NCBI GenBank assembly: GCA_965644315.1
Contig: CBFFRQ010000197.1
Location: forward strand, 1-52,669
DNA: 52,669 nt
Source: Caecitellus pseudoparvulus
Taxonomy: Eukaryota; Protista; Bigyra: Bicosoecida
Reading direction: 5' to 3'
In this document: positions 1 through 18,830 of the stretch, in pieces
Numbering within the stretch: the stretch's first letter is position 1
Layout of the letters: each line of letters opens with the position of its first letter
Notes under the pieces: model-generated
Databases searched by the model: none
What the model saw: the letters and a program-made list of their open reading frames with translations, nothing else
Told to the model about the DNA's origin: nothing
Program-made: the position numbers and the translations under genes

Positions 1-1352
1 AACCCTAACCCTAACCCTAACCCTAACCCTAACCCTAACCCTAACCCTAACCCTAACCCTAACCCTAACCCTAACCCTAACCCTAACCCTAACCCTAACC
101 CTAACCCTAACCCTAACCCTAACCCTAACCCTAACCCTAACCCTAACCCAAACCCTAACCCTAACCCTAACCCTAACCCTAACCCTAACCCTAACCCTAA
201 CCCTAACCCTAACCCTAACCCTAACCCTAACCCTAACCCTAACCCTAACCCTAACCCTAACCCTAACCCTAACCCTAACCCTAACCCTAACCCTAACCCT
301 AACCCTAACCCTAACCCTAACCCTAACCCTAACCCTAACCCTAACCCTAACCCTAACCCTAACCCTAACCCTAACCCTAACCCTAACCCTAACCCTAACC
401 CTAACCCTAACCCTAACCCTAACCCTAACCCTAACCCTAACCCTAACCCTAACCCTAACCCTAACCCTAACCCTAACCCTAACCCTAACCCTAACCCTAA
501 CCCTAACCCTAACCCTAACCCTAACCCTAACCCTAACCCTAACCCTAACCCTAACCCTAACCCTAACCCTAACCCTAACCCTAACCCTAACCCTAACCCT
601 AACCCTAACCCTAACCCTAACCCTAACCCTAACCCTAACCCTAACCCTAACCCTAACCCTAACCCTAACCCTAACCCTAACCCTAACCCTAACCCTAACC
701 CTAACCCTAACCCTAACCCTAACCCTAACCCTAACCCTAACCCTAACCCTAACCCTAACCCTAACCCTAACCCTAACCCTAACCCTAACCCTAACCCTAA
801 CCCTAACCCTAACCCTAACCCTAACCCTAACCCTAACCCTAACCCTAACCCTAACCCTAACCCTAACCCTAACCCTAACCCTAACCCTAACCCTAACCCT
901 AACCCTAACCCTAACCCTAACCCTAACCCTAACCCTAACCCTAACCCTAACCCTAACCCTAACCCTAACCCTAACCCTAACCCTAACCCTAACCCTAACC
1001 CTAACCCTAACCCTAACCCTAACCCTAACCCTAACCCTAACCCTAACCCTAACCCTAACCCTAACCCTAACCCTAACCCTAACCCTAACCCTAACCCTAA
1101 CCCTAACCCTAACCCTAACCCTAACCCTAACCCTAACCCTAACCCTAACCCTAACCCTAACCCTAACCCTAACCCTAACCCTAACCCTAACCCTAACCCT
1201 AACCCTAACCCTAACCCTAACCCTAACCCTAACCCTAACCCTAACCCTAACCCTAACCCTAACCCTAACCCTAACCCTAACCCTAACCCTAACCCTAACC
1301 CTAACCCTAACCCTAACCCTAACCCTAACCCTAACCCTAACCCCTAACCTAA
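1..1352. repeat. Terminal telomeric array (CCCTAA)n, i.e. TTAGGG on the - strand; ~1.35 kb
   Basis: Near-perfect CCCTAA hexamers from base 1. One CCCAAA variant at 147-152, and CCCCTAA/CCTAA variants at the inner junction (1341-1352). Confidence 0.99.
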
Positions 1353-4300
1353 AGAGATCATGGGACTGCAATGCTTCAGACCAAGTCCACCTGACCGTCC
1401 ACCAGGACGAAGTGAGGTCGCCTTGCTCATCGACAGAAGACTGCGGGCTCAACGGATGGGGGACCTTGGCCTTGATGGCCGCTGTGTTGTTGCTTGCACC
1501 ATTCCCACAACGCCAAAGCCTCTTGCAATCATCGCGGCATATGTGCCAAACTGGCACACAGCGCAGCGAAAGAAGCCGTTAGCAGACCCAGATACAAAGC
1601 TACCTCACAGGCAGCAGATTTGGGAACAGCTCACAAATGCTGTTCAACATCTGAGGACAACCCACATGATCACACTCATGGGTGATCTGAACTGCCACCC
1701 AGGTCAACACGGGGTAGCTTCGTGGGACACGTCATGCTGGCGCAACCAATCCGGTATCCCCGACCCGACGGACGACGTTCAGGAACTGGCGACTGTGTGT
1801 GAACAGGCACAACTTCAGCCTGCTGGGGTTGGGGGACAGCCTACCCAAGCTACCTTTCAGAGAGTCTTGGATCACATCCTCGTATGTCCCTCGCTGCGGT
1901 CCCGGTTGGTAAAGCCCCTTGCTGTTGTCACAACATATTCAAGCGCCAGGAAGAAGAACCACCGAAAGATGATCCTCAGTGACCACCACATGCTCACTGC
2001 CGGCGTTGCAGTCAAGCTGCCCCCCCGACCCAAAGCCTCCAGACAACATCCATCAACCCACTCTGTCCCCCCGTGGTGGGCATCGTCCACACGTGAGGGA
2101 CTCAAGGCGCAGTACATGCACAGACGCCATCTTGATGCATCTCTTGGGCCAACCGACCTGCATGTCCCTGGTACTGGAGATGAGGCAGAAGCACTCCAAA
2201 GCTTGGACGCCCTCATTGCTACCAGTGCTCGAACCACGCATGCCCAGTGCAAGTCCACATCACCTCAAATGATTCAGGCATTTGCTGACATACCACGACT
2301 CAGCTCCCTGAAGAAGCGCATGACAGCCAAAACGAGGTCCATCCAGAAGCGACTTGTAAAGCTCCGTCGGCGCAAGCATCTGCTGCGGCACTCCTCACTG
2401 CCTAGCTCGATCGAGGCTCTGCGCAAGGAGGAGGAGCGGGAACACATGCTGCTTGAAGACCTGCATGCGACGAGGACTGAAAGGAGGCAAGCAATGCGCA
2501 GGTGCACCAGACTCGTGGCAAAGAAGCATAAAGCCGCGAAGTTCCAGGTTCAGCACCGCATCAGGGAGCTTACACTGGCCGACCCATTCACTGCGCACCA
2601 ACACATCCGAAAGTTGGCTGGGAAGAAGCGGAAAGGCACAGTGTCCTGCATCCAGTCAGTACTCGACAGCAACGGAACACTCATCACGGAACCTGCTCTC
2701 GTTCGGTCCACAGTGCGGGACCACATGTCCCAAATCATCAGCTCCCCCCCTCTAGAGCTTGCCCCACTGAAGTTCGGTTTGGCCCGGCTGCTGCCGTCTG
2801 CACAAGATGCCACCGCCTCTCATGATGCTTGGGTCCCAAGTGTGGACCTCATCATGAGAAAGATCCAGTCACTCAACCTACACCGCAACCCTGGCACTGG
2901 AAGCTTCCAAGCTGAACATCTGAAGTACGCCAGTGAAGCCTTCAGGAAGAAGTATGCTGTTACCCTCCGCCAAGCCATCAGCACTGGCTCCTGCCCTGAG
3001 GAGTACCACTGTGGCGTCGGGACTCTCATCCCAAAGGCCGCTAGCCAACCCGGACGAGTACAGACATACCGCCTCATTGTTTGTCGCCCACCTCAAGCCA
3101 AGCTGTTCTTCTCTGTGGTAGCAGCTTGTGTAGAAGACTGGGTCCAAAGGTGGATCTCTCCAGAACAAGCTGGCTTTACTCATGCTCGAAACACGCATGA
3201 ACAGATACTAGCACTACAAGAAACTTCTGCTGCGTATCTTCGAACAAAGCCGGACGCCAGTGTCCTCATACTCTTTGTTGACTTCAGAAGCGCCTTCGAT
3301 ACTGTCAGTCACGGTGCGATCATTGAGATCCTTGAGAGCGCAAATCTCCCGAGCGCCCTACTCGAATGTGTGAAAGACTACATGCGGCGAGCTTCTGTTG
3401 CCATCCACACGGGGCACGGCCTCTGCAACCCCCTACCGGTGACAAACGGTGTCCCACAGGGTGGAGCCCTGTCGCCTCTTCTGTTCAAAATTGCCATAGA
3501 TGTCCTCTCTCACCGGCTCAGAGAACTACCAAAGCAGGGGGTGGCGGGTGCAGGAGTGCCCACACCCCGAGGCCGAGTCACCCACACGCTGTATGCGGAT
3601 GATCTGGCCTGCCTGGCTACCACACCAGCTGCCCTCCACCGAATGTTTCTCGAAGTCAAATCTGTGGGCAGTCGTGTTGGACTGACCATAAACCCCAACA
3701 AGTCAGGTGTCATGATCTTGACTGGAGCGCAACATGTCAGAGGCATATCAGCGACAGAGAGACGAAAGCTGGTCTGGAGATCCCGCTGGCTCAAGTCTGG
3801 GGAGATGTTGAAAGTAAAGGGGGCGCCCATCCAACGTACGAGTGTCTACTCGTACCTTGGTGCCCCACTTTCAGAAAACTTCAGCCGCACCAGGCTGCTT
3901 GCCTTGAAGCATGCAACACAATCTTGCACCCGGGCTGGCTTCGCCTGCGGTGCCCTCCTTAGTGGCGTCTGGCTTAGCCCAAGTCTCAAACAGCGGGTCG
4001 GTGCTGCAGCTGTCAACAGCGCCGCCGACTACATCCTTGCCTCTCAGGTCAGCAACTCCGTGCTACCTCTTCGAGATCTTGACCGAGGACTGGCCATTGC
4101 CTTCTCTAAGGCCCAGCTTGGCATGCAGAGTTCACTAGCTCGGATGCACAACTATGCAAAGTTGGCTGTGTGTGGCATCCTGCCAGCACACATCCGAGCG
4201 ACAAGATTACGCAGCAACATCTTCAAAAAGTTGCTGAAGAACTTGCACAGCCCCACGCCTATAGTCAAAGCCCTGTCATCCAGCCTTCATCAAGCCCTGC

Positions 4301-6549
4301 GCCAGCTTCCGCCCACCATGGACATGGCCTTTGTCTTTCAGGCCAATGTCCGCCTGGATAGGAAAGGACCGGGAGGAGTTCCAGACCCCTGGGCCCTGCA
4401 CGGTCTCCTTGACCTTTGGCTACATGGTTGCCTCCCTGATCGCCGGGCACTTGAGGCAGCCTGCCAAGAGCCAGCCGCAGACTCATCACCCGAAGCACAG
4501 GGGATCGACATCCTTGCTCGGTTGGATCCCCCTCCAACCAAGGCCCAACTCCTTGGACTTGCTGCCCCGGAGCTGTCAGACCTCTCCCAACCCCCAACCT
4601 TCCCAGACAAGACCTCTTGGTCGATCAGACAACATGTAGTCGCCTCGTTCCTCCATGTTGCACAAGCGGTTCAATGCCAAGAAGTTGGCTACACCACCAC
4701 TGGCGAGATGAAGCGCTCAAGGCGGCCTAAGGAGTTCCACGTTGGACTGGGGGCCTGTTTCTTCACATGGCTCCACCCCATCCCCTCTTCTGTAAACCCA
4801 CTCTTTTGGGTCCATGAAGATGACCAACAAAGCCGAGTCAAGATCCACCTCTGGCAAACGCTGCAGGTCTTCAATGGGGGAGACACCCCCACACTCTTCA
4901 GCGAATGTCCCTTGTGTCATGGAGTTTCATGGTGTACACTCCATGAACATGTCCTCTTTGACTGCCCTCATTACAAACTGCAACCATCGCGGACGAACGC
5001 AATGGTTGCAGTGCGGAATTTCCTAGAGCGGTCAAATGACGCGGTGAGGGGGGTGGCCAACGCCCAACACCTTGAAGTGCCCCCCCTCATCCTGGATGCT
5101 GTTGTCCGGGCTGCCGAAGGCCGCTTTGTGGGCCGACCGGGTCGCTTGATCCTTCTTCGCCTTCTACTGTGCGGCCAGTGGCCCCACCGGTGGGGCCAGC
5201 CTCCAACACAGCAGCTTTGGAGACCTGAGGCGGCCGCAGTCCTGAGCAACCCTCATGTTGCTCTCCGCGGCCCCTCAGGTCCTCTCCGCCCTCCCAAGTA
5301 CTGGAAACAAGCTCTGGCTGCCGCCACGAGCTTCTCTGTATCTGCGTGGGACGTGCTGGTAACATGCATGCTGGGACGTACCTCACAGGCTGATCGCCAT
5401 GTCCAGGTACACGCCAGGTACCTGTGGTGGGCTGCCCATGGCCGCACGAGTCCACTTCCAGGCTTCTCCACCCCTGACCCAACCGCTGTGAGAAAGCATA
5501 CGCGACATGTTCGCACGCGGCGCTTTGAACGGACTTACTTTCCTGTCAGGGCTGAGCGCAGGCCTCCTCGCTCCTTCACGAGGCAGGCCACTCTCCTTGA
5601 TTTTGGTCTCGCACGGCCCGAAGCCCGTGATGACCCTCCATCACCCTCTTCCAACTCGGCCATGTCCTCCGAGATGTCCTTGGAAAGTCCATCGTCTTCT
5701 GAATAGGCGGGGATCTGTGAGAGACAAAGCGCGGAAACAGGCAAGCTTACATGTGTATCGTGGTGAGAACCACGGTCGTGGTTGACTGCGAAGGCGAGGC
5801 TGCTACATGCGCTGTCCTTGATGCTTGGTTTTCTCTGTGAAAAGCAAGGTTATTGGAAAGTGAATGTTGTCAGTATACGTACCTGTGTCTTTGAGGTCCA
5901 CAGAAAGACCCACTGGCGGCTCTGCGATGTTGTGGGCGGAATTTGGGAGCGTGAACAGACGGGCGCCGTGTGCAACGCCGCACGCGGAACTTACAGGTCC
6001 GCCACGTCCTGATAGATGATGTGGCTGGAACACCTGTGAACAAGGGAGCAAGCTGGTGTGTTCTTGGTGGGCGGGGGGACGTTGTTCCGGCGGTGCGCGC
6101 TGCTACCACCGGCGTGGTGCAGTGCAGCACCGCCATGAAACGCCACCCCCCAAGGCGGCCACTGCGGCTCAGTTCAACGCGCAGTGGCCCCAGGCACACG
6201 TGCAGTGCCTGGCAGAGGCCAAGAGATCTGGGGGACTGATGAATTATGATGCGAAATGTGGACTGGGACGAAGTAGGAGTGGGCCCGGCCCCCTCTGGCT
6301 CAGCCGACTGAGCCGAGAGGGCGCGGGAGGGACAGTTCAGCATGTATGGGCGGGCGCGGGCGCGCCCTAGCAAGCGGCGGCTCATACAACGGACGTATGT
6401 CCGTGATGGCTGCAGACCCACGAGAGTGGGAGCCGCTGTGGTGCCTACTGCAGTGCATTCGTGTGCTGTGGTACGCAAGGCACCACGAGTGATGCCCAAG
6501 CTGTACCGTGCAAGAGTGTGCGGAGGCAAGTTGCAATGCATTGAGTGAG
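1353..6549 (+). mobile_element. Telomere-associated non-LTR retrotransposon, family A (copy 1), 5'-truncated inside the APE domain
   Basis: APE-RT-CCHC ORF plus ~840-nt 3' UTR ending ...GCATTGAGTGAG|CTAACC. Telomeric repeats on both sides; no poly(A). Confidence 0.95.
1360..5706 (+). CDS. Non-LTR polyprotein: partial APE endonuclease + reverse transcriptase + CCHC zinc knuckle (uninterrupted but N-terminally truncated)
   Basis: APE motifs AYVP, MGDLN, LDHIL, SDHH. RT motifs QAGF, FVDFRSAFD, GVPQGGALSP, YADD (3592-3603), INPNKS, YLG. CPLC...HVLFDC near 4905-4966. The start Met aligns to an internal Met of copy 2 (KEIMGLQC vs TEVMGLEC), so the N-terminal APE motifs WNVHG/TE are missing. Confidence 0.93.
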   Translation: MGLQCFRPSPPDRPPGRSEVALLIDRRLRAQRMGDLGLDGRCVVACTIPTTPKPLAIIAAYVPNWHTAQRKKPLADPDTKLPHRQQIWEQLTNAVQHLRTTHMITLMGDLNCHPGQHGVASWDTSCWRNQSGIPDPTDDVQELATVCEQAQLQPAGVGGQPTQATFQRVLDHILVCPSLRSRLVKPLAVVTTYSSARKKNHRKMILSDHHMLTAGVAVKLPPRPKASRQHPSTHSVPPWWASSTREGLKAQYMHRRHLDASLGPTDLHVPGTGDEAEALQSLDALIATSARTTHAQCKSTSPQMIQAFADIPRLSSLKKRMTAKTRSIQKRLVKLRRRKHLLRHSSLPSSIEALRKEEEREHMLLEDLHATRTERRQAMRRCTRLVAKKHKAAKFQVQHRIRELTLADPFTAHQHIRKLAGKKRKGTVSCIQSVLDSNGTLITEPALVRSTVRDHMSQIISSPPLELAPLKFGLARLLPSAQDATASHDAWVPSVDLIMRKIQSLNLHRNPGTGSFQAEHLKYASEAFRKKYAVTLRQAISTGSCPEEYHCGVGTLIPKAASQPGRVQTYRLIVCRPPQAKLFFSVVAACVEDWVQRWISPEQAGFTHARNTHEQILALQETSAAYLRTKPDASVLILFVDFRSAFDTVSHGAIIEILESANLPSALLECVKDYMRRASVAIHTGHGLCNPLPVTNGVPQGGALSPLLFKIAIDVLSHRLRELPKQGVAGAGVPTPRGRVTHTLYADDLACLATTPAALHRMFLEVKSVGSRVGLTINPNKSGVMILTGAQHVRGISATERRKLVWRSRWLKSGEMLKVKGAPIQRTSVYSYLGAPLSENFSRTRLLALKHATQSCTRAGFACGALLSGVWLSPSLKQRVGAAAVNSAADYILASQVSNSVLPLRDLDRGLAIAFSKAQLGMQSSLARMHNYAKLAVCGILPAHIRATRLRSNIFKKLLKNLHSPTPIVKALSSSLHQALRQLPPTMDMAFVFQANVRLDRKGPGGVPDPWALHGLLDLWLHGCLPDRRALEAACQEPAADSSPEAQGIDILARLDPPPTKAQLLGLAAPELSDLSQPPTFPDKTSWSIRQHVVASFLHVAQAVQCQEVGYTTTGEMKRSRRPKEFHVGLGACFFTWLHPIPSSVNPLFWVHEDDQQSRVKIHLWQTLQVFNGGDTPTLFSECPLCHGVSWCTLHEHVLFDCPHYKLQPSRTNAMVAVRNFLERSNDAVRGVANAQHLEVPPLILDAVVRAAEGRFVGRPGRLILLRLLLCGQWPHRWGQPPTQQLWRPEAAAVLSNPHVALRGPSGPLRPPKYWKQALAAATSFSVSAWDVLVTCMLGRTSQADRHVQVHARYLWWAAHGRTSPLPGFSTPDPTAVRKHTRHVRTRRFERTYFPVRAERRPPRSFTRQATLLDFGLARPEARDDPPSPSSNSAMSSEMSLESPSSSE

Positions 6550-6555
6550 CTAACC
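6352..6555 (+). ncRNA. Conserved structured 3'-terminal RNA element of family A, ending in CUAACC
   Basis: Series of hairpins and a multiway junction with compensatory changes relative to family B (12435-12626); see findings. Confidence 0.7.
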
Positions 6556-6586
6556 CTAACCCTAACCCTAACCCTAACCCCTAACC
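6550..6586. repeat. Interstitial telomeric tract between copies 1 and 2: (CTAACC)5-C-CTAACC
   Basis: 37-bp tract read directly from the sequence. Confidence 0.98.
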
Positions 6587-9500
6587 AGAACCTTCCATGC
6601 CGACCACCGAGCAAGACAAGCTTGACCTCTTTCAATCGTTCCTGTACCGACATGCGCCTGATGATGCAGCACTCACCAGTGCCTGTCCACCTGTGCTCCT
6701 CCCTGGTCTTCATCTCTTGCTCACGCGTATCAACGAGGGCCATCGGGAACTTGAAGGCGGCACAGTGTCTGGACACTGCCTGGTTGATGTCAAGGCAGAG
6801 AAAGAGATGACCTCCGAGGCAAAAGTCTTTGCTGGGGTGTACTTCGCGTTTGCTCTCAGCTTGGTTGACACTGGAGGTGTCTCCCACCTTCAGCTCATTG
6901 TCGTCAACGCTGAGAAGTCCACACTTGTACTGTGGAACCCTGACGAACCCTTCAAGAGCACCAACATTCCAATCGACGGCTGCCTGAACACACTCGACTC
7001 GATGGGCATTGAGTCTGTGTACCGTGTCTCATCCTCCCCGCTGAGTGGCAAGCCGATTCCCTTCAAAGACAGAGTGCGGCTGGCCATGCTGTCCCTCAGG
7101 TCTGACTTTCCCCCACTCCCGTTCGTAGCTGAGGACGAGACTGTCTACCCAAAGACTCTCATCACTGGCAAGACAACACGGGTGTACCTCCCTGTAGGCC
7201 GCACCACGCGCCAACAAGCAGCTGCCGATGAGAGAGCCAAGACGGTTGACCCCATACTGTCACTCATCCCAACATCTGTACAAGTCGCCGACCAGATCAG
7301 TAGCGATGCACCCCATACCCCTGTCGGCCGCGGAAGACACATGACACTCGCACTTGCTGCTTGGAATGTGCACGGCTCCTGCGGCCAGTGTGTCCACGAT
7401 GTCGTCACCTGTGTCCAGTCTGTGTGCAGTGCGTCGTCCATGTTGGCACTCTGTGTCACAGAGCCTGGGGGGCACGGCCTGCTCGACACGGAAGTCATGG
7501 GCCTTGAATGCTTCCGCCCAAGCCCGCCTGATCGGCCTGTCGGGCGGAGTGAGGTTGCCTTGCTGCTTGATCGAAGACTCAATGGCTCAGTGATCCCGGG
7601 CCTCGACGTTGATGGTCGCTGCATAATTGCTTGCTCGATCCCTGCAAGCCCACAACCCATCGCCATCATAGCCACGTACGTACCCAACTGGCACTCTTGG
7701 CAGCGAAAGAAGCCAGTCGCTGATCCGGACACGAAGCTTCCGTACCGGCAAGAGGTTTGGCGGCAGCTTGAGTCTGCTGTTCAACAGCTCCGCCTCACCC
7801 ACATGATTGTCATCATGGGTGACTTGAACACTCATCCAGGTGACGAAGGGGTAGGCACGTGGGGAGCAGATCACTGGGAGAACCGGACCGGCATTCCCGA
7901 GCCCACTGAAGACATCCTGCAGATGCAGCTCCTCTGCGAGCAAGGCCCACTGATCCCAGCCGGACTTGGTGGCCTGCCAACGCACAGGTATGGTCGGGCT
8001 CTGGACCACATCCTGATGACTGAGGACCTCCACAGTATGTTGAGCAGACCACTGCACATCACAACAACGTTCTCCAGCGGGACGAAAAAGAGTGCCGCTC
8101 GACTAGTCCTCAGTGACCATCATCTTGTTGCAGCAGAAGTCCGAGTGAAGCCTGCCAAGCGAGTGTGGACATCATCCAAGAGCCCCCATGTACAGGCGGT
8201 GCCACCCTGGTGGACCTCAGCGACAGAGGCTGGGCTGGCAGCGCAAGCGATGTTTCGAGGATCCCTCAGCTCGCGGGCCACCGCGCTCCAGACAGGCAGC
8301 GCCGCCCCGAGCCTATCCTTTCTCAACGGTGCTATCGAAGCTGCGGCTATGGACACACATCGCAAGGCCAAGACCCCACGTGACCCTCTGCCCCAGCTGA
8401 AGATGGACATCAAGGCGGCCAGCGGGCTCAAGAAGTCCATGACTGCACGCGTGTCCAAGCTGCGGAAGACCATTGCCAAGCTGCACCGGAAGCTCGCACT
8501 TGCCACCGGTCGGCATCCTCAGCCAGACCACGCCCGTGCCATCCGAGAGGGAATCTCCATGGCCACTGAAGAGCTACACGCCACGCTTCAATGCCGCAAG
8601 GATGCAATGCGGAAGTGCACGAGGCTTGTGAAGAAGAAGCGACATGTCACTCTGTCCAGGATCCGAGCACGCTTGAGGGAACTCGCTGTCACGGATCCCT
8701 TCACTGCCCACCAACACATCAAGCGCCTGTCAGGTCGAGGTCGTCGAGCCCGTCGAGCTCCCATCAGGTCCGTGAAGTCCATGCAGGGAGTGCTCATCTC
8801 CTCCCCTGATCTGGTGAAGGAGGAGGTTGCCAAGCAGATGTCTGGCATCCTGAGTCACAACAAGCCCAGGCCAACATCGCTGAAGTACGGGCTGGCAAGG
8901 TTCCTTCCCTCAGCCCAAGAGTCCTTCACCCCGCCAGTGACATGGCTTCCCTCCAAGAAGCAAGTCAAAGTCCTCATGGGATCACTCAGCTTGCATCGAC
9001 ACCCAGGCTCTGGCAAGTTCCAATCAGAGCACATCAAGTATGCTGGGCCAGGCTTCCAAGACATCTACTCCCAAGCCGTCATCCAAGCGTTGCAACACGG
9101 CACCTGCCCGCCAGACTACCATGCAGGCATTGGGTCACTCATCCCCAAGAAGACGAGTGAAGCTGGGCGGCCTCGCACATACCGCTTGATTGTATGCCGC
9201 CCCCTCCTGCGAAGCTCTTCTTCTCAGTGGCCGCTGCATGCCTGGAGTCCTGGATGCAAACATGGGTGTCGAAGGAGCAGGCTGGCTTCACTCGACACCG
9301 CAACACGCATGAGCACATCTTGGCTCTCCAAGAGGTGATCAAGGGCCACCTGCGACAGTCAACAGCGCCAGTGCAAGTCCTGGTACTCTTCGTGGACTTC
9401 CGGGGAGCATTCGACTCTGTGAGCCACGCAGCCATCACAGAGATCCTTGAGGCTGCCTCCCTCCCTGCGCCACTCCTGGCCGTCATCAAGGAGTACATGT

Positions 9501-12500
9501 CCAAGGCGACGGTCTCCATCAACACGCGCCATGGTCTTTGTCGCCCCCTTCCTGTCAGCAATGGTGTCCCCCAAGGAGGAGCTCTGTCCCCCCTCCTCTT
9601 CAAGGTTGCGATAGATGTGCTGTCGCAAAGGCTCCACGAGATGCCCCTCCAAGGCATCCAGGGAGTGGGCATCCCAACACCAGCAGGCCATGTCACCCAC
9701 ACCCTGTATGCAGACGACCTGGCCTGCATCGCAACGTCTGCCACGGCCTTGCACCGAATCTTCGTAGAGGTGAAGGCCATCGCTGCCCGGGTTGGCCTTG
9801 CCATCAACCCGTCGAAGTCCGGGGTCATGATCCTTGCCAACTCCGTGCGAGGCAGCCGGACACCAGTCAGTGAAAGGAAGAAGTTGGTGTGGCGCTCGGC
9901 TGCCCTCAAAGCGGGCAGCATGCTGAAGGTTGGCACCAAGTCCATCCAACGGGTGGCCGAGTACACCTACTTGGGTGTGCCGATGTCCGAACATCCTGCC
10001 AAGACCCGTGCACTTACCCTGCAACAAGCTGGGCTTGCTTGCATCCAAGCCGGGTTCACTGCGGGCGCGCTGCTCAGTGCCACCTGGCTCGATGTGCAGC
10101 AGCGGCACCTGGTTGGGTATGCCACTGTCACGTCAGCCGCCGACTACATGCTGTCCACCCAAGCCAACAGTTCCCTGCTTCCGCTGCGCGATGTTGACCG
10201 CGGCGTCGCCCTCGCCTTGGACAGGACCCAAGTCGGCTCGCAGAGTGCACTCATGCGCCCCCACAGCTACGCCAAGCTGGCTCTATGCGGAGTCCTGCCT
10301 GCCCACATCCGCTCCACGCAACTGCGGACTGGGATGTTTGTCAAGGCTCTCCGGATGCTGCACTCGGACACCCCTCTTGCCCGAGCTCTGTGCCTGACCA
10401 TCCCGCAGGCCCTTGACCTTATGCCTGCTTCGATGTCGACGACCTTCATCGTCGACACCATCGCTGATGGGGGTCGGCTTTGAGCTGCCAGTGTCCCTGC
10501 TCCGTGGGCACTGCATGCCCTCTTGGACCTCTGGCTCATGGGCTGCATGCCAGACCTTGCACAGCTTCGGCTTGCATGTGCACCTGGCTCTGAGCATGCT
10601 GCCACAGCCCTTGCCCAAGTCCTTGCCGGACTTAAGACCACCCCGGGCCTCCACAGGTCTGCGGTGGTTGGGGTGGCTGCCAGCGAGACGTCGTCCATGG
10701 CCGAACCCCCGGCCTTCACGGCAGACACCCCCTGGGCCCTGCGTCGCCAAGTCCTCGCGTCGTATCTTCATGTAGCCCAGGCAGTGCCGAGTGCAGCTGC
10801 CCACTACACCACCGACAGCCGAATCCCCCAAGTGCAGAAGCCCAGGCCGTATCATCTTGGGCCTGGTGCGCAGCACTTCGTGTGGCTACATCCACTGCCA
10901 CACGGGGTGAACCCCCTCTTCTGGGTCTGTCCTGATGACAGGCCCACCAGAGTGATGGTCCATCACTTCCAGACCTTACAGCTTCTTCATGGGGGGGACA
11001 GTGCCACTCTGTACGAGTGCTGTCCGATTTGCGGACTCAACACCGATGTACAGCTGCACGTGCACATCCTGCTGCACTGCACCCACCACGAACTCACCAT
11101 GGCACGCCAACACACGATGACCAAGTTCAGAGAACTGGCCAACAGGTCAGCTGTGCCCGAGTCCGCGGCGGGCCAAGTGCAGTGCCTGCCCATCCCCCCA
11201 AGATCTGCCACGCCCTCCTTCGTGCCCCCGACCCAGAGCCGCGAAGCCTGCGGGACCTCGAGGTCCTCCACAGGCTCCTGCTCTGCGGGCAGTGGCCTCA
11301 CCGGTGGGGGCTGGCCGACGAAGAGCAGCTTGTCTCTATGAAAGAGGCGGCTGTCCTCTCCCACCCCCACCTCGTCCACCGTGCTGGTCCTTGCCGTGTC
11401 CGTGCCCCAGCTGTATGGCAAGACATCCTGCGCAGCGCGGTTGAGTTCACAGCAAAGGCGTGGCGGGTCACAGTCACTTACATGTTGCGTATGACCGATG
11501 CCCACCACCTTGCTGTCCAGAGGCATGCTGAGTACCTGTGGTGGGCAGTACATGGGCGCGGGGCGCCGCTGCCTGGCCGCACGCAGCCAGTGCGGTCAGC
11601 GGCCACGCGGCACACGCGCAGGCCCCGCACTCGCCGCAGGGCACGCACCTTTTTCCCTGCCAAGGCTGGCCAAGTGCCGTCCACGGAGGGCAAGGTCCAG
11701 AGGACGCTGCAGCACTTCATGGGGCCTCAGCCAGCCCATGCAGACACTGATGGTGAGGGGGAAGGGCCCGATGGTTCCTGTGAAGAGAGCGAGGAGTAAG
11801 GCGGAACGCAGGCGTGCGGGCGGGGAGTGGAACAGCCACGCTTGTGGCCGCGTCTACCCTCCACGAGTGTCCTGACGTGATGAACCTGTGTGAAGCGTGG
11901 TGATAACCACGGTAGCCCGAAGCAGATGCCCAAGACCTTACCTTTTACTTACTACATAGCCTGCGAGTAGCAGTGGAGTGAGCGGGAGCGTGCCTCGGGC
12001 CGCGGCGCGTGTGCAGCCGCAGTGCTGCACGGCCGCGGCCCGGATGGCGGCTGACGATGAAGCAAGCTCACTCACCACGAAACCAGGGCGTGACGGGTTG
12101 AAGAAGAAGGTCCTTTTCCTTTCTGTATCCCCCTTGATGCGCGCGATGCGCTCTGTGGCGCGGGCGCGTGTGTGCGCACGGGTGCTGGTGTGCGCGATCG
12201 AATTCCGCACCACGCACCCGGCCGAGTTCCCGCGCAGAGGCGGAGCACACACCTCATGAAGGGCGCAGAGAGGCCTATGAGGGCCACAGAGGAGGTGGGT
12301 GAGGAATTTGGATTATGATCTGTTGTCAAGACTGCGCGGATGCCTGGGTGTGCTCTGGTGTGCCCCAGGTGTCTGGCGCTGGCGGAGCAAGGGATGAAGT
12401 GTAGCGGAGGAGGGCCAAGATGATGAATTGGAGCGGGCAGGGACCTGCCCTAGCAAGTGGCGGCAGATATAACGGGTGCAAGCCTGTGTTTGTTGCGAAT

Positions 12501-12620
12501 CCGCGCCAAGCGGTAGCCGCTGTGGCGTCCTACATGTGCAGAGGTGCATTGTGGGGCGCCCGTGTGACGCTCAAGCTGTACGGTGCCAAGCTGTGCCGAG
12601 GTGAAATGCATTGTGAGTTG
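6587..12620 (+). mobile_element. Telomere-associated non-LTR retrotransposon, family B (copy 2); longest copy, probably still 5'-truncated
   Basis: Homologous to copy 1 along the whole ORF and at the 3' end. The reading frame is open up to the telomeric tract. Ends ...GCATTGTGAGTTG|CTAACCCTAACCC. Confidence 0.95.
6597..11799 (+). pseudogene. Disrupted polyprotein: N-terminal domain + complete APE + RT + CCHC
   Basis: APE motifs WNVHG, VTEP, TYVP, MGDLN, LDHIL, SDHH; YADD at 9707-9718; CPIC...HILLHC. Interrupted by a 1-nt loss in a C run (~9200-9204), an in-frame TGA (10481-10483) and a second C-run loss (~11194-11199). The ORF pieces 6597-9338, 9194-10483, 10523-~11199 and ~11199-11799 join colinearly with copy 1. 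Confidence 0.88.
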
Positions 12621-12626
12621 CTAACC
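12435..12626 (+). ncRNA. Conserved structured 3'-terminal RNA element of family B (repeated at 14694-14885)
   Basis: Same hairpin order as 6352-6555 with compensatory substitutions. Confidence 0.7.
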
Positions 12627-12634
12627 CTAACCCC
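12621..12634. repeat. Minimal telomeric linker CTAACCCTAACCC(C) between copies 2 and 3
   Basis: Two repeats. The final ACCCC overlaps the first bases of copy 3 (microhomology). Confidence 0.93.
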
Positions 12635-14879
12635 TCTTGCCCGAGCTCTGTGCCTGACCATCCCGCAGGCCCTTGACCTTATGCCTGCTTCGATGTCGAC
12701 GACCTTCATCGTCGACACCATCGCTGATGGGGGTCGGCTTTGAGCTGCCAGTGTCCCTGCTCCGTGGGCACTGCATGCCCTCTTGGACCTCTGGCTCATG
12801 GGCTGCATGCCAGACCTTGCACAGCTTCGGCTTGCATGTGCACCTGGCTCTGAGCATGCTGCCACAGCCCTTGCCCAAGTCCTTGCCGGACTTAAGACCA
12901 CCCCGGGCCTCCACAGGTCTGCGGTGGTTGGGGTGGCTGCCAGCGAGACGTCGTCCATGGCCGAACCCCCGGCCTTCACGGCAGACACCCCCTGGGCCCT
13001 GCGTCGCCAAGTCCTCGCGTCGTATCTTCATGTAGCCCAGGCAGTGCCGAGTGCAGCTGCCCACTACACCACCGACAGCCGAATCCCCCAAGTGCAGAAG
13101 CCCAGGCCGTATCATCTTGGGCCTGGTGCGCAGCACTTCGTGTGGCTACATCCACTGCCACACGGGGTGAACCCCCTCTTCTGGGTCTGTCCTGATGACA
13201 GGCCCACCAGAGTGATGGTCCATCACTTCCAGACCTTACAGCTTCTTCATGGGGGGGACAGTGCCACTCTGTACGAGTGCTGTCCGATTTGCGGACTCAG
13301 CACCGATGTACAGCTGCACGTGCACATCCTGCTGCACTGCACCCACCACGAACTCACCATGGCACGCCAACACACGATGACCAAGTTCAGAGAACTGGCC
13401 AACAGGTCAGCTGTGCCCGAGTCCGCGGCGGGCCAAGTGCAGTGCCTGCCCATCCCCCCAAGATCTGCCACGCCCTCCTTCGTGCCCCCGACCCAGAGCC
13501 GCGAAGCCTGCGGGACCTCGAGGTCCTCCACAGGCTCCTGCTCTGCGGGCAGTGGCCTCACCGGTGGGGGCTGGCCGACGAAGAGCAGCTTGTCTCTATG
13601 AAAGAGGCGGCTGTCCTCTCCCACCCCCACCTCGTCCACCGTGCTGGTCCTTGCCGTGTCCGTGCCCCAGCTGTATGGCAAGACATCCTGCGCAGCGCGG
13701 TTGAGTTCACAGCAAAGGCGTGGCGGGTCACAGTCACTTACATGTTGCGTATGACCGATGCCCACCACCTTGCTGTCCAGAGGCATGCTGAGTACCTGTG
13801 GTGGGCAGTACATGGGCGCGGGGCGCCGCTGCCTGGCCGCACGCAGCCAGTGCGGTCAGCGGCCACGCGGCACACGCGCAGGCCCCGCACTCGCCGCAGG
13901 GCACGCACCTTTTCCCTGCCAAGGCTGGCCAAGTGCCGTCCACGGAGGGCAAGGTCCAGAGGACGCTGCAGCACTTCATGGGGCCTCAGCCAGCCCATGC
14001 AGACACTGATGGTGAGGGGGAAGGGCCCGATGGTTCCTGTGAAGAGAGCGAGGAGTAAGGCGGAACGCAGGCGTGCGGGCGGGGAGTGGAACAGCCACGC
14101 TTGTGGCCGCGTCTACCCTCCACGAGTGTCCTGACGTGATGAACCTGTGTGAAGCGTGGTGATAACCACGGTAGCCCGAAGCAGATGCCCAAGACCTTAC
14201 CTTTTACTTACTACATAGCCTGCGAGTAGCAGTGGAGTGAGCGGGAGCGTGCCTCGGGCCGCGGCGCGTGTGCAGCCGCAGTGCTGCACGGCCGCGGCCC
14301 GGATGGCGGCTGACGATGAAGCAAGCTCACTCACCACGAAACCAGGGCGTGACGGGTTGAAGAAGAAGGTCCTTTTCCTTTCTGTATCCCCCTTGATGCG
14401 CGCGATGCGCTCTGTGGCGCGGGCGCGTGTGTGCGCACGGGTGCTGGTGTGCGCGATCGAATTCCGCACCACGCACCCGGCCGAGTTCCCGCGCAGAGGC
14501 GGAGCACACACCTCATGAAGGGCGCAGAGAGGCCTATGAGGGCCACAGAGGAGGTGGGTGAGGAATTTGGATTATGATCTGTTGTCAAGACTGCGCGGAT
14601 GCCTGGGTGTGCTCTGGTGTGCCCCAGGTGTCTGGCGCTGGCGGAGCAAGGGATGAAGTGTAGCGGAGGAGGGCCAAGATGATGAATTGGAGCGGGCAGG
14701 GACCTGCCCTAGCAAGTGGCGGCAGATATAACGGGTGCAAGCCTGTGTTTGTTGCGAATCCGCGCCAAGCGGTAGCCGCTGTGGCGTCCTACATGTGCAG
14801 AGGTGCATTGTGGGGCGCCCGTGTGACGCTCAAGCTGTACGGTGCCAAGCTGTGCCGAGGTGAAATGCATTGTGAGTTG
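12630..14879 (+). mobile_element. Family B copy 3: 5'-truncated 2.25-kb 3' portion, near-identical to 10370-12620
   Basis: Direct repeat at offset 2260. The only differences I found are an A/G at 11040/13300 and a 1-nt T-run indel at ~11651/13910. Ends GTTG|CTAACC joined to unique DNA. Confidence 0.95.
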
Positions 14880-14885
14880 CTAACC

Positions 14886-16020
14886 AAAGGGTCGCCACCA
14901 CCGGCAGCACAAGCCACAGAAGGCAGACTGGCCAGGCTGCTGGAGCCAGTGATGGCAGACAGCACAGACATGTCACCTGTGCCAGCTGAGTCAGTGCCAG
15001 CATCGCGAGTATACAGCGTGCCGTTCAGATCTGCGGTCGGATAGCCTGCCCACGGCCTGGCCAGCTTGCATGCGCCTGCCCACTGATGCAGGGAGTGTGC
15101 TGACGCTTGGAGAGAGTCTGGGCCCGATGGGGCAAGGATTGCGATCTGCGCTGAAATGCCCATGAACCACAGCATGATCCGCAGTCCGCCCAAGAACAGG
15201 CTGGTGGTGAGCTTCTCAGCAGACTTGGCATGCTTGCGGAGAGCAAACACTGCCAACGTCATCGCCATGATGACCTGCAACACAGCAGAGCCAATGGCTG
15301 CACATGCTGACGATACTCTGGTGTCAGGATGCTGCTCACAAACTGAACAAGGTGGCGTGGCAGCCCAGGGCCTCCCTGACGTCCCCCCGGACGTGATCGT
15401 CCCTGCAATTGAGGCTGTCTTGGCTGGCCCTGTCGGTGTTGCTGGGCTTGTTAATGGCGTGCTCTGCGCATTTCATGACCCTAGGACTGCCTGGGACAGC
15501 AATCATGACCACCCGTACAGCGCTGGGACGATCAAGACTACCACCCCAGCATGGAGAAGGGACGGTGACGGTGCTCTCACATAATGCGGCTGAGTTGGGC
15601 GTCGCTCGGTCACTGCTGGATGGAAAAGGTTCAGTGGACGCCGCAATGAAAAGGGAAGCGACTGACAAACGAGGTTAGACATTGTACAGGTACATCGAGC
15701 TCTCTGAGGCCTCGAAGTGCAAGGCAGGAACCCTGGCAGGCACGGCACACACCGTCACAAAGGAAAACTGGACCGTGCAGATTGTCGTGAACACAGCCCT
15801 GGCCTGCTCTGCACACACCTTGCAGGTCCAATGGCAGTCTGTGGGAGTGCCTTTTCTTCTCGGCGATGTATCCAGCCCACCACACTGCCAGGCCATGCCA
15901 GCGAAGCGAACCAGTCCCGCTGCGGCGCTTCCACATCCTGGGCTAGCTGAAGCGATGCCCACAGCAACACGTCCAGCCGCACCACATACAGCTGTAACCA
16001 AGATGGACGTCGAAAACACC
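14886..16020 (-). pseudogene. Degraded host coding sequence with hydrophobic segments, cut at its 3' end by retroelement copy 3
   Basis: A - strand frame is open from ~15473 through the junction (...VLQVIMAMTLAVFAL...AAGGGDPL|VSNSQ) and only stops inside the retroelement. Broken ORFs lie upstream. No family recognised. Confidence 0.4.
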
Positions 16021-16902
16021 CAGCCACGCGCCCCCCGAGCAGGCGTGCACCGAAAGATTCACCAGCTCCACCTCGAGGTTGGCCGCCACCGCTTCAGCTG
16101 CAAACGCCAGTGCCGCATGGCTAAAAGGCCCGGCCGGCCACATGCAACGTGCAGCACAACAGTACATAGGTGCAGAAGGGTGGACTTTCTAATATGCCTC
16201 TCGTCAGCAAGGGGGCAACCAGCTGCAGCGCTGGGCGCTGGAGCAGGGCTGGCCTTGTGCTGGGTGGTGTGAAGGGAGTTTCATCCTGAACGGCGGACAA
16301 TCACAAGCCGCTTGTTGAAAGGCCTGGAGCACGGTGGAGGCAGCACACATGTGACGTGCACCCTTCACATGTCTACGTCCACATCGCCCTCCGACACCGG
16401 GGAACTTCACCCTGCCATGAAGAGGCGGCCAGAATGCTCAGCTGCATGGCAAGGGTTGGTGTTGGCGGTGCGAAACGCGAGGCCACACCGACACAGGGCG
16501 CTTCTGGCTGGACGGGTGGTGTTCCTGCAAAGATTGGGGAACTGTATGTCGAAGTGGCTTCAATGGGTACATGAAGCAGTGAAATGTGGCAAATATCCCT
16601 GAACAGTCGCTGCAAGACGCCAACAACTCTGGGTTGGAAAGTCACGCAGTGAGCAACGGGTCTCCTACTGAAGTGCATTTTGCAATAAGCTTCTTTGTTT
16701 TTCATGCCCTGCTCCCCATAGGCACGCACAGGCTGGACGTAGTGGACGGCAGTTGCCCTGTCCACGCCACAGCCCCCAAGCACCTCCACGGCGCCTGAGA
16801 TGCATGTGCTCTGACCTCCACCTGCACCAGTCGCTCGTCCAAGCGCACTGCGCAGCAGGCCCTGCCTTTGCTCCCACAAGTACCATGACCACGACTGAGG
16901 CT

Positions 16903-17200
16903 GCAGAAAGCTGCTTGAAGTTTGACCTTTCCCACGCCGTGTACCTTGGCCTTGTTGTCTCCGCAGCAGCTGGCCGAGAGTGCCCTGTGTCGAGCGTGGG
17001 TGAGGTGATCAAGGAAGAATGCAGGCTCCCATGCAGGCTGTGGCAAGGCTTCGAAATCGCACCTCAAGCCACTTAACGCCCCAAACCACGCCCTCCTTGC
17101 AGCCTTCGGCCTGACCCCAGCCCCAAGCTTGCGAAGCCTGGCCCGTCCAGGTACAGCGGGTGTCCGCCAACGAAGCCAAGCCTCCAATTCAACCTGCACC
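16903..17200. repeat. Dispersed diverged repeat, copy 1 (paralogue at ~24293-24590)
   Basis: Colinear similarity, e.g. AGCTGCTTGAAG..CCCACGCC..CCTTGGCCTTG..GCAGCAGCT..GTGCCCTG..CGAGCGTGGG.GAGGTG.TCAAGG.AGAATG.AGGCT.CCATGCA. Confidence 0.8.
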
Positions 17201-17241
17201 CAACAGCCAGAGAAGCACCCCCACAAGTGCAGAGTGCACAC

Positions 17242-18040
17242 CTACGCAGTGACAACCCACGTTCTGTACAGCTCCATTGACTTTCGTCCGTGGCGAGTGC
17301 TCGAGGCGCCCCAGACAGCGTCCTTGACTGCCTCCGCCTCGTTGTCCCCTGTCGCAAGCCAAGACTTGGGAGCAACTGCTCGAGCTCCACCCAGACCCAC
17401 GAGCTCCCTACAACCGCAATAACGACCTCCTCGCATGCCAGACGAAGACCAGCTTCATCTCGACGTGCACGTCCACACTTCGACCATTACTCAAGGCAAG
17501 AAGCTCCCGATCCACGCCCAAGTGGCCGATGGAGCTGGCCCAGACAAAACCAAAGTCAAGCCCGCGTGCATCCCCAGCACTTTCAACAGCGTAAAGGCCT
17601 GTCAGAAAGAACATCCCCTGCACAACGGAAACGAGCCATTCTGAAATGCCCATCGAGCGTCGAACCCTTCCCGAACATGTTCAACGCAAGCTGCCCCCCA
17701 GCAAACTCAAGCAGCTCAAGGACGCTTACATGCCTGCCATGGCACATCTTCACAAGCCCGGCCCCAGATTCTTTCCCATCACTTGCATGCGCGTCCACGG
17801 CTTGGCCCCCTCAAAGTGCGAGAAGCTCCCACAACACATCCACATGCCAGCCTGAAAGCAGCTCTTCACCTGGATCTACCCCTCGCGTGTTCGTCAGCTG
17901 CCCGGCCACCACGCAAGCTCAAAAGTGTCACCACCATCCCAGGTGTCCATGCTAGCGTGCGAGTCGAATCCTGGCCTCAGGCCCGTGGAGGTCTGCTGTA
18001 TGCACGTCCACTACGCGCTCGCCTTCCAAAAACGAGAGTC
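17242..18040 (-). pseudogene. Atypical ankyrin-repeat family pseudogene; close paralogue of 26756-27890, 5'-truncated
   Basis: Frameshifted VDVH/RELL units; C-terminal AVKDAVWGASSTRHGRKSM; DNA colinear with 26780-27575. Confidence 0.8.
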
Positions 18041-18041
18041 T

Positions 18042-18830
18042 CTACTCTGCCCGCAGAAGTAACGCAGCTCTGTGCCCCTGCCGAGTGCTTGTGCCGTCTC
18101 AAACGGCATCTTTACCAGCCTGGACAGCAGCCGGCCCGGCATCAAGCCTGTCCTGGAGCGGAGTGGTGCGACTGCCAGTCAGTGCCAGCAGCTCTCGCAT
18201 GACACCTACATTGCCACCTTGGAAGGCAAAGCGGAACACAGCCTCGTTGCCCGTGTGCACATCCACAGCCCGCTGCCCAGTTAGAGCCAGGAGTTCTCGC
18301 ACTATTTCCACATGGCCAAATGCATAGGCTTCGCGGAAGCCAGCCTCAGGCACACCCCTTGGCCCGGCATGCACACCCACTGCCCGGCCACCCTCCAAGG
18401 TCAGGAGCTCGTGGACCACTTCCAAGTGACCGTCCTTGCACGCACCCCGGAACCCTCCTTCGGGCCCAAGCCAGCCCCCTTGCGTGCACATCCACAGCAC
18501 GCGGACCAGTCAGAACTACGAGTTCACGCACGATGTCGACGTGACCACGCCCACATGCCTCCTGAAATCAGACCTCTCGCCCACCCAGACCGCCAGCATG
18601 CACATTCACCGCACCTTCACCTGCCAACGCCTGGACATAGCGAACTTCCTGCACCCTTCCGTCTCAACAAGCAGGCAGGAGTTTGGCTTCGCCTCTGCCA
18701 CTTCCGTGTCCACCGCCCGGCATGAAAGGGCTGGTCAGGTCAATCGGCATCATTGGCTCCAACGGCATGAAAGTGCCTGCACCTCCGAATGGTGCTTGTC
18801 ATCCCTCCTCTGGCGCTGCTTCATGCGGCT
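18042..18830 (-). pseudogene. Atypical ankyrin-repeat family pseudogene
   Basis: GPEGGFRGACKDGHLEVVHELL and GHVEIVRELLALTGQRAVDVH units; C-terminal GKDAV*DGTSTRQGHRAALLLR with an in-frame stop at the conserved Trp. The 5' boundary is approximate. Confidence 0.75.

Follow-up and report, generated by a model that had tools for sequence, protein, structure and literature searches.

A stack of three elements at the chromosome end

The window, a 52,669-nt stretch of contig CBFFRQ010000197.1 from the Caecitellus pseudoparvulus assembly GCA_965644315.1, opens in positions 1-14885 with a telomere cap followed by a 13.5-kb stack of three co-oriented non-LTR elements from two families (A, B, B). The + strand is the C-strand, and all three copies lie on + with their 5' ends toward the chromosome end; the tract, spacers and joint described below are given on the same strand. 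The terminal telomere tract (1-1349) consists of (CCCTAA)n, equal to (AACCCT)n, with 224.7 repeat copies and 99% matches. The last repeats before copy 1 (1341-1353) are irregular and read CCCCTAA CCTAA AG.

Copy 1 (family A, 1350-6549) retains about 5.2 kb of an element of about 7.6 kb or more and is 5'-truncated within the APE domain. Its open frame (1360-5706) encodes 1,448 aa from an internal Met, with the APE remainder beginning at aa 12 and the RT located at about 3028-3741 (Pfam RVT_1, 4.6e-30). The Pfam Exo_endo_phos match begins only at profile position 65, and other family A copies show an upstream in-frame continuation beyond the start of copy 1. The WNV and LTEP motifs (endonuclease N and E catalytic motifs) are absent from copy 1 and present in the copies of contigs C134 and C163. 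A conserved, structured 3' UTR module is found at 6335-6549, then the tail GCAATGCATTG and 6 nt.

An interstitial telomere repeat of 37 bp (6550-6586), beginning CTAACC, separates copy 1 from copy 2 (family B, 6587-12620), which is missing about 1.57 kb of its 5' end. Copy 2 encodes an APE domain at about 7542-8120 and an RT at about 9248-9979 (Pfam Exo_endo_phos and RVT_1). Its frame is broken by 1-nt deletions in C runs at 9199 and 11193 and by a stop among six clustered substitutions (10462-10483); eight differences separate it from an intact copy, L016, whose open frame is at least 1,837 aa. A 14-nt telomeric spacer (12621-12634, CTAACCCTAACCCC) follows, the last 5 nt of which can be read as copy 3 too (microhomology). 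Copy 3 (family B, about 12635-14879) comprises only the 3'-terminal 2.25 kb, that is, the C-terminal coding part and the 3' UTR, and was compared with 10375-12620 of copy 2 (2 differences in 2,245 nt).

At the joint between copy 3 and the subtelomere (14880-14888), CTAACC plus AAA adjoins a subtelomeric repeat that is broken at this point, its other copies extending further upstream than the point corresponding to 14889. This repeat family (14889-19885, no strand assigned) lies outside the elements and forms the proximal limit of the stack. About 12 copies (89-92%) were found at other contig ends, and the first 480 bp also occur at internal sites.

Protein identity between families A and B was 58-60% across the RT region. 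The family A copy ends in ..ATGCATTGAGTGAG and both family B copies end in ..ATGCATTGTGAGTTG, in each case followed by CTAACC. Poly(A) or any A-run was looked for at the 3' junctions and not found, CTAAC(C) following each 3' end directly. Beyond the terminal tract, telomere units of at least two repeats occur in the window at element junctions only. The earlier note on this DNA had described head-to-tail polarity, two families, CTAACC at every 3' end without poly(A), and very short telomeric spacers of 37 and about 13 bp; these features were borne out for the three window copies, the spacers measuring 37 and 14 bp. The 5' truncation of all three had been overlooked. The stack very probably consists of three copies, all dead and 5'-truncated, from a non-LTR group that is APE-type, poly(A)-less and specific to telomere repeats.

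Anatomy, selection and relatives

Intact relatives are about 7.6 kb long, start with TTTCCAAATGTCAA and encode a polyprotein in the order N-terminal region (about 830 aa), APE endonuclease, RT and Cys/His C-terminal region. The 3' end is formed by a conserved structured 3' UTR and then ..ATGCATTG-N5-7. The single-ORF APE element of the earlier note had been read from truncated copies; one ORF is indeed present in the intact element, where it spans about 2,160-2,190 aa. Examples include a 7,608-bp element on contig C154 (2,187-aa ORF) and a 7.6-kb element on L045, a contig from an independent metagenome, with a 2,159-aa ORF and telomere repeats on both flanks. At least six subfamilies were recognized, each with some intact copies (open frames of 2,000-2,386 aa). 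The longest family A copy found, on C134, is likewise 5'-truncated.

LTRs or other terminal repeats were looked for and not found, nor was a separate ORF1, intact copies having a single frame from the 5' region through the RT. Exo_endo_phos and RVT_1 were detected by Pfam in copy 1, copy 2 and the intact L016, and comparison of the RT with structures matched R2 and L1 ORF2p (1e-16 to 1e-11). With an APE-like domain and then an RT in one protein, and without LTRs, the family is an APE-type non-LTR (LINE) family. Varied 5' truncation points with a common 3' end, a LINE-like trait, were observed in the window copies and in many others. The N-terminal region gave no Pfam hit at E up to 0.1, and an AlphaFold2 model of window positions 6597-7340, based on a four-row alignment, had a pLDDT of 48, too low in quality to support a fold search. 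A His...Asp...Cys spacing noted in this region does not, in our reading, match that of Ulp1-type proteases. Pfam detected no zf-RVT domain in copy 1, copy 2 or L016 and no domain downstream of the RT, and a sequence search of the PDB returned no APE match better than E 0.15.

The 3' UTR fold contains 53 pairs (97% paired), 17 of them with compensatory changes; none of 500 shuffles scored as high and slid controls reached at most 7. This conserved fold may be counted as support for RNA recognition in the LINE model. An HDV-like or other self-cleaving ribozyme setting the CUAAC/UUUCC ends was unsupported by an Rfam search at E up to 1 (L034, L045 and window positions 1300-15500), which returned nothing except one chance lncRNA match.

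The APE motifs WN, (T/S)EPGG, AAY.P, GDLN, RA.D and SDH are kept in families A and B and in the related proteins P0001 and P0002 (32-34% relative). Between B subfamilies, dN/dS was 0.115 overall, 0.075 for the APE and 0.065 for the RT; purifying selection thus extends along the whole ORF, APE and RT included. About 11 family B copies are near 100% identical.

Only two full-length relatives were recovered among 5.8 billion proteins (66% and 34% identity), the next matches appearing only at E 1e-26. In a FastTree phylogeny of 99 RT domains, which contained no named reference clades, the family grouped with zf-RVT-bearing (L1-like) rows. In the same tree, with no named R1 reference, it stood apart from all Exo_endo_phos_2-type rows (support 99), whose architecture we take to be that expected of the Jockey/CR1/R1 group. 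The L1-like grouping is indirect, running through plant L1-like proteins in a tree free of Repbase and Dfam references.

Genomic distribution and junction register

Ninety-four RT-region matches were present in the 30.6-Mb assembly, in subfamilies ranging from 100% down to 33% identity. All but one (93/94) are located no more than about 25 kb from a contig end and have their 5' end facing outward, in agreement with the expectation in the earlier note of end-confined copies with one polarity, and most chromosome ends of this small telomerase-positive genome carry the elements. The genome search for TERT that had been proposed alongside also succeeded: the gene lies on contig C77 (Telomerase_RBD and RT, open frame of at least 1,135 aa) and coexists with the elements. 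End-only location, single orientation and single register place the family in the class of telomere-repeat-specific LINEs.

The register was invariant. At other contig ends, 29 of 29 distinct 3' junctions, representing five end-types, read ..ATGCATTG N5-7 and then CTAA(C)(C), and a sixth 3' end-type appeared as a loose read end; the constant CTAACC register proposed from the window therefore holds across families. Since telomere units stand only at junctions in the window and the same register recurs in all of these distinct junctions, the window junctions are not due to chance. CTAAC(C) is retained even when the next base is non-telomeric, which fits an RNA that would itself end in CUAAC(C).

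Full-length 5' ends are immediately preceded by ..CTAAC, and the spacers ahead of full-length copies follow 5+6n (5, 11, 23, 29, 71) with the exception of two tracts containing irregular repeats. On L020, L028 and L006, full-length elements are linked 3'-to-5' by CTAAC alone. A TSD is indistinguishable inside a 6-bp repeat, and the full-length registers (..CTAAC, element, CTAACC..) correspond either to the duplication of 5 bp or to the loss of 1 bp. In 12 of 29 junctions the spacer from the element to the first non-telomeric base measures 5-6 nt, a sharp mode, and long proximal telomere tracts were also found (at least 300 bp in at least four junctions, about 650 bp in C134). An irregular CCTAAA(G) joint is common to four independent truncated 5' ends.

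Some junctions are common to different contigs (L014 is identical to L029, and L020 and L028 are similar), so subtelomere duplication or contig redundancy accounts for some of the copies. A broader proposition is unlikely, namely that the stacks mostly arose as a few old insertions were multiplied by recombination among subtelomeres, by break-induced replication or by redundancy in the assembly, with little owed to ongoing telomere-directed retrotransposition. It would account for two family A copies lying 7,602 bp apart on C44, for the same upstream 300 bp in the family A copies of C134, C67, C44 and C163, and for an assembly rich in short telomere-bearing contigs; however, it is opposed by a diversity of junctions (29 or more distinct contexts and numerous truncation points), by intact copies in each of the subfamilies, by purifying selection on the whole ORF, and by the same element type in an independent metagenome. 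The window contig itself is not a duplicate, because its subtelomere is only about 91% like the nearest copy.

A long-read misassembly chaining repeats and telomere reads is highly improbable as the origin of the array. The two C-run deletions in copy 2 are typical of long-read consensus error, and no single public read or contig was shown to span the entire stack, but the same architecture occurs at dozens of contig ends with differing partners and spacers and again in a short-read metagenome contig from a separate study. In addition, among assembled short contigs of public runs, compared over 12560-16500, a 106-nt contig of run X1 spans 14862-14967, across the joint of copy 3 and the subtelomere, with zero mismatches.

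Related telomeric elements and the source of the priming end

The kind of element described here is already known from TRAS/SART, MoTeR, Tx1-1_ACar, Zepp and HeT-A/TART. The arrangement has precedents in silkworm, rice-blast fungus and fruit fly, and the lineage appears to be new and undescribed in the literature searched. The proposal of a distinct hybrid system was accordingly not sustained; precedents exist, for example MoTeR, which resides in TTAGGG telomeres and abuts telomere repeats at its 3' end (PMC7367193, PMC10088271, PMC5537684).

MoTeR1 and MoTeR2 of Magnaporthe/Pyricularia oryzae are non-LTR elements that form co-oriented arrays within (TTAGGG)n; their relics all keep telomere repeats 3', 5'-truncated copies are capped with telomere repeats via short in-frame seeds, interstitial tracts at stable ends are very short, and a non-autonomous partner exists (PMC7367193). 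Variant repeats, TTCGGG(TTTGGG)n, stand at the 5' ends of intact MoTeR1 copies (PMC7367193). The window family is like MoTeR in its co-oriented non-LTR arrays in TTAGGG telomeres, telomere repeats at 3' ends, 5'-truncated copies and short interstitial tracts. The differences are that its APE lies upstream of the RT, its 5' end (TTTCCAAATG..) is free of repeats, it has one ORF (about 2,170 aa) and its RT fell on the L1-like side of a tree without named reference clades, whereas MoTeR1 has a CRE/SLACS-type RT and a restriction-enzyme-like endonuclease. The window contains no RT-less partner element.

With TRAS/SART (R1 clade; Bombyx and other insects) the family shares an APE-type endonuclease, insertion confined to telomere repeats, always at one nucleotide and in one orientation, and stacking proximal to the telomerase repeats. 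TRAS/SART have two ORFs, a poly(A) tail and a TTAGG target. The window family instead targets TTAGGG and has a single ORF and a terminal CTAAC(C) without poly(A). For SART1, at least three repeats are required and the 3' UTR affects the start site of reverse transcription (PMC7265360). Tx1-1_ACar (anole lizard) and Zepp (Chlorella) are L1-like LINEs in telomeric repeats or regions of telomerase-bearing hosts (PMC10088271, PMC5537684); the window family resembles them in telomeric location, presence of telomerase and grouping with L1-like zf-RVT-bearing proteins, a likeness drawn from descriptions of these elements.

Head-to-tail arrays with 5' ends outward and terminal 5' truncation are also shared with HeT-A/TART/TAHRE of Drosophila and with EN-minus Penelope-like elements (Athena). 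The Drosophila elements end in oligo(A) in a host without telomerase or telomere repeats, whereas the window genome has TERT and a 1.35-kb (CCCTAA)n cap. EN-minus Penelope-like elements such as Athena and Coprina lack an endonuclease and carry a PLE/telomerase-like RT, in contrast to the LINE-type RT and conserved APE under purifying selection of the window family.

In the proposed mechanism, target-primed reverse transcription of the element RNA would start at a G-strand DNA end, ...GTTAG-3', to which the terminal RNA bases CUAAC(C) would anneal. Such annealing would give every copy the same 3' register, turn its 5' end outward and place new copies distal to old ones. Telomerase would then restore TTAGGG repeats on the outer end, and 5' truncations could result from incomplete copying or terminal erosion. 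Three parts of this scheme are inferred: where the RNA ends, that it anneals, and where the priming 3'-OH comes from. The human telomerase RNA template is CUAACCCUAAC, the CUAAC part of which aligns with GTTAG-3' DNA ends; by analogy, the terminal CUAAC(C) of the elements would match exactly the end made by a TTAGGG telomerase.

As the source of the priming 3'-OH, an endonuclease nick within the repeats is modestly favored; a natural or eroded chromosome end is plausible with lower probability, and both together or some other source would be rather improbable. The earlier note had placed priming on the natural G-strand 3'-OH, which was not supported: retention of all APE catalytic motifs in four diverged lineages, together with the low dN/dS of this domain, argues that nicking is used. 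The sharp spacer mode counts against the LINE nick model, being unexpected from random insertion into tracts of 0.3-1.3 kb, so this model needs an extra assumption, either a boundary preference or the loss of long interstitial tracts. Such loss has been reported for MoTeR (PMC7367193).

We regard as doubtful the alternative in which the endonuclease goes unused, the CUAAC(C) tail pairs with a natural G-overhang or an eroded or broken end, and the RT extends that end directly in the manner of HeT-A/TART or terminal Penelope-like elements. Several junctions are in keeping with it: the 5-6 nt between element 3' end and non-telomeric neighbor; copy 3, which sits on a terminal-deletion breakpoint of the subtelomeric repeat with only CTAACCAAA intervening; the CTAAC-only joins, which are expected of consecutive additions or template jumping; and the same irregular first repeat at the four truncated 5' ends, which suggests de novo telomere synthesis on a once-terminal element. 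A dispensable endonuclease would decay, however, as in the EN-minus Penelope-like elements, whereas the catalytic motifs persist down to 32-34% identity, and the long proximal tracts are expected of insertion inside a tract. Short spacers do not require end-priming, because MoTeR, which carries an endonuclease, has been observed to insert anew at a distance of one repeat from the telomere boundary, and its long interstitial tracts are unstable (PMC7367193).

Nicking within the repeats is modestly preferred as the source, and any role of the elements in end maintenance is conjectural. If direct end extension were true, it would constitute a second end-maintenance system beside telomerase. A more speculative version, to which we assign a low probability, is that the elements mimic telomerase RNA: CUAAC(C)-ending transcripts would be copied nick-free onto natural, critically short or broken G-strand ends, healing and lengthening them beside telomerase, and the endonuclease would serve only entry into long tracts. 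If true, chromosome ends outside Drosophila would have a functioning back-up system in these elements.

Mobile elements and chromosome-end maintenance are linked in nature chiefly through telomere-specialized retrotransposons. A 2023 survey of telomeric elements covered insects, Giardia, Chlorella, rice-blast fungus, anole lizard and rotifers, with no stramenopile (PMC10088271). The family described here represents an independent origin and combines features in an informative way (a selected APE, no poly(A), a 3' terminus in the register of the telomerase template and one giant ORF), and its stacks, in which as few as 5 nt join neighboring elements, are found in a telomerase-positive genome. 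Given the 5-6 nt spacer mode and the joint with the broken subtelomere, whether an endonuclease-bearing LINE may also use free chromosome ends becomes a testable question.

Layout of the telomeric stack

The window is one entire contig of 52,669 bp, in an assembly of 30.6 Mb and 215 contigs. A terminal telomere tract of (AACCCT)n opens the contig at positions 1-1349 of the + strand (1,349 bp, 99% regularity), which makes the + strand C-rich and places the chromosome end at position 1. Inward of it, the + strand carries three non-LTR elements: copy 1 (family A, 1350-6549), whose open frame at 1360-5706 carries the Pfam domains Exo_endo_phos and RVT_1; copy 2 (family B, 6587-12620); and copy 3 (family B, about 12635-14879), which matches the terminal 2.25 kb of copy 2 with 2 differing positions. 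Copies 1 and 2 are separated by 37 bp of telomere repeat (6550-6586), and copies 2 and 3 by the spacer CTAACCCTAACCCC (12621-12634). In the window, family A ends in ..ATGCATTGAGTGAG joined to CTAACC and family B in ..ATGCATTGTGAGTTG joined to CTAACC; copy 3 is followed by CTAACC, then AAA, then non-telomeric DNA. No A-run was found at the 3′ ends of the three window copies, and telomere units beyond the terminal cap occur in the window only at element joints. The earlier note's observation of a co-oriented non-LTR stack with CTAACC at every 3′ end and without poly(A) was therefore correct.

None of the three window copies is complete. Twenty other B copies carry on, with conserved sequence, upstream of the point that corresponds to 6587. 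Other A copies extend in frame upstream of 1354 across the endonuclease motifs WNV and LCLTEP, reaching at least 1.7 kb farther upstream past them, so that copy 1 starts inside the APE domain and is without these two catalytic motifs. An element on another contig, C154, has its 5′ end (TTTCCAAATGTCAA) immediately after the ..CTAAC of a telomere tract, and is 7,608 bp long with a single 2,187-aa open frame whose ATG lies 220 nt in. Copy 2 differs from an intact copy at only 8 positions. Two of them are 1-nt deletions in C runs, at 9199 and 11193, for which long-read consensus error is a possible cause. The other six, all substitutions, sit close together at 10462-10483 and introduce a stop; gene conversion or local misassembly may have produced this patch.

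The stack is flanked by a subtelomeric repeat family (14889-19885) with about 12 copies at other contig ends (89-92%), the initial 480 bp of which were also found at internal sites (C66, C40 and C68). This repeat is broken in the window at 14889, where the stack starts. Since other copies extend farther upstream than the position equivalent to 14889, copy 3 lies at the breakpoint of a terminal deletion, separated from it by CTAACCAAA alone. The nearest other copy of the flank from 14889 onward is ~91% alike, and the contig is thus not a duplicate of another. The remainder holds ankyrin and XK-related genes (21637-24099 and 42837-44387) and, on the - strand, two giant open frames. One (28844-42334) encodes 4,496 aa and matches an AAA ATPase weakly; the other (44779-52668), which includes a thrombospondin type 1 domain, spans at least 2,629 aa and is cut off by the contig end.

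Genomic distribution, selection and telomerase

DNA searches of the assembly returned ~85 pieces matching copies 1 and 2, all near contig ends. A protein search with the RT region returned 94 matches. These fall into subfamilies with identities of about 100, 82, 67, 58, 36 and 33%, and many contain open frames of 2,000-2,386 aa. All + strand matches lie within 22 kb of a contig start, and - strand matches lie 1.5-16 kb from the right end of their contig. The sole exception is a 208-aa relic (G000:C23:10663-11160, - strand) on a 58.8-kb contig with telomere repeat at neither end. Judged by strand and position, 93 of the 94 matches point their 5′ ends outward, which supports the proposal that copies are confined to chromosome ends with one polarity.

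Some 11 B copies share nearly 100% identity. Between two B subfamilies (dS 0.26), dN/dS was 0.115 overall, with 0.075 in the APE, 0.065 in the RT and 0.12-0.17 elsewhere; for copy 1 against the C134 copy it was 0.10. The APE catalytic motifs are retained in A, in B, in the metagenomic relative P0001 and in P0002, the last of which is only 32-34% identical. The terminal ~200 nt of the 3′ UTR share a predicted fold across five end-types (53 pairs, 97% of cells paired), in which 17 pairs show compensatory changes, a score matched by 0 of 500 shuffles and against at most 7 in slid controls. Judged from sequence, a selected APE and RT together with a conserved 3′ UTR fold are what would be expected if the RT of a LINE recognised the element's own 3′ UTR. 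Outside this folded module, every end-type has a palindrome, CAATGCATTG (in B, AATGCATT), 5-7 nt upstream of the CTAAC tail (window 6535-6544 and 12606-12613).

The search for TERT that the earlier note had called for located one on contig C77, with Telomerase_RBD (74-79 bits) and RT within a single open frame of at least 1,135 aa; the elements thus coexist with telomerase. Separately, a 221-nt contig from a public marine metatranscriptome run (X20) joins telomere-like repeats to a 5′-truncated 3′ UTR of this element type, with 8 mismatches to window 14698-14865. Its source may be a transcript of such a stack, or carried-over DNA.

Junctions and the source of the primer

We tabulated 29 distinct 3′ junctions in five end-types, a sixth end-type being a loose read end. 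Every tabulated junction reads ..ATGCATTG, 5-7 variable nt, then CTAA(C)(C), and full-length 5′ ends have ..CTAAC directly upstream. Spacers before a full-length copy that follows another element measure 5+6n (5, 11, 23, 29 and 71), except for two tracts with irregular repeats. Jointly, the 5′ and 3′ registers are equivalent to the target having either 5 bp duplicated or 1 bp deleted. The distribution of spacer lengths is strongly skewed, with 12 of 4-7 nt, 6 of 9-14 nt, 7 of 22-71 nt and 4 of at least 300 nt.

The common register, the polarity and the 3′ UTR structure are consistent with target-primed reverse transcription in which a putative RNA tail, CUAAC(C), pairs with a G-strand end, ...GTTAG-3′, that acts as the primer. 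In the human telomerase template (CUAACCCUAAC), CUAAC is likewise the part that aligns with the DNA end, so the element tail would pair with the end made by a TTAGGG telomerase. The 3′-OH could come from an endonuclease nick inside the repeats, as favoured by an APE that is intact and under selection and by junctions with long proximal tracts. A spacer mode of 5-6 nt, full-length copies joined by CTAAC alone and the copy 3 joint at a subtelomeric breakpoint favour instead free or nearly bare chromosome ends, or template jumping.

At the distal telomere, an irregular repeat, ..CCTAAA(G), joins the tract to four independent 5′-truncated copies, as ..CCCTAA CCTAA A(G): copy 1 (window 1341-1353) and loci L044 (C134), L011 (C201) and L024 (C53). 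Full-length 5′ ends are joined instead as ..CCCTAAC followed by TTTCC. By its sequence, the irregular first repeat resembles the product of repeat synthesis started de novo where an element end had once been the chromosome terminus, and it may bear the mark of the way this telomerase initiates on non-telomeric ends. In Magnaporthe, a newly observed insertion of MoTeR, although that element has an endonuclease, lay one repeat from the telomere boundary; long interstitial telomere tracts there are fragile, and in-frame telomere seeds are present on most truncated copies (PMC7367193). Short spacers and seeded caps thus do not by themselves demonstrate end-priming. SART1 requires at least three repeats (PMC7265360).

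At another locus (L018, C154, about 18,060), CTAACCTAACCCTA comes after the 3′ end of a B copy and leads into very AT-rich DNA that contrasts with the GC-rich genome; this DNA may have an organellar or foreign source and have been captured where the chromosome once ended.

Relatives and known telomere-inserting elements

A search of 5.8 billion clustered proteins returned only two full-length relatives (66% and 34% identity), beyond which matches fall to E 1e-26, the best being a plant L1-like protein. An exhaustive scan of 1.84 billion representatives gave only 10 proteins at E ≤ 1e-30, most of them partial sequences from this family. The 7.7-kb contig that encodes P0001, from a different metagenome, carries telomere repeats; the 5′ end there is again TTTCCAAATG, and the 3′ end is ..ATGCATTGAACAG joined to CTAACC. 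About half the words in the window stretch also occur in marine metagenomes. The family was monophyletic among 99 RT domains (FastTree), and its RT grouped with all zf-RVT (L1-like) rows, apart from all Exo_endo_phos_2-type rows, a placement that is only indicative, given a tree without named references. Two distant metagenomic relatives, P0124 (3,724 aa) and P0127 (2,485 aa), share 26-32% identity over the RT and are far longer as proteins. Giant single-ORF LINEs may form a broader clade.

[quoted passage not shown] The present family differs from TRAS/SART in having one ORF and no poly(A), from MoTeR in carrying an APE rather than a restriction-like endonuclease, from Drosophila-type telomeres in the presence of telomerase, and from EN-minus Penelope-like elements in its LINE-type RT and APE. 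The literature searches turned up no description of it. A telomere-inserting LINE is a kind of element already known, and the C. pseudoparvulus family is a variant not described in the literature searched.
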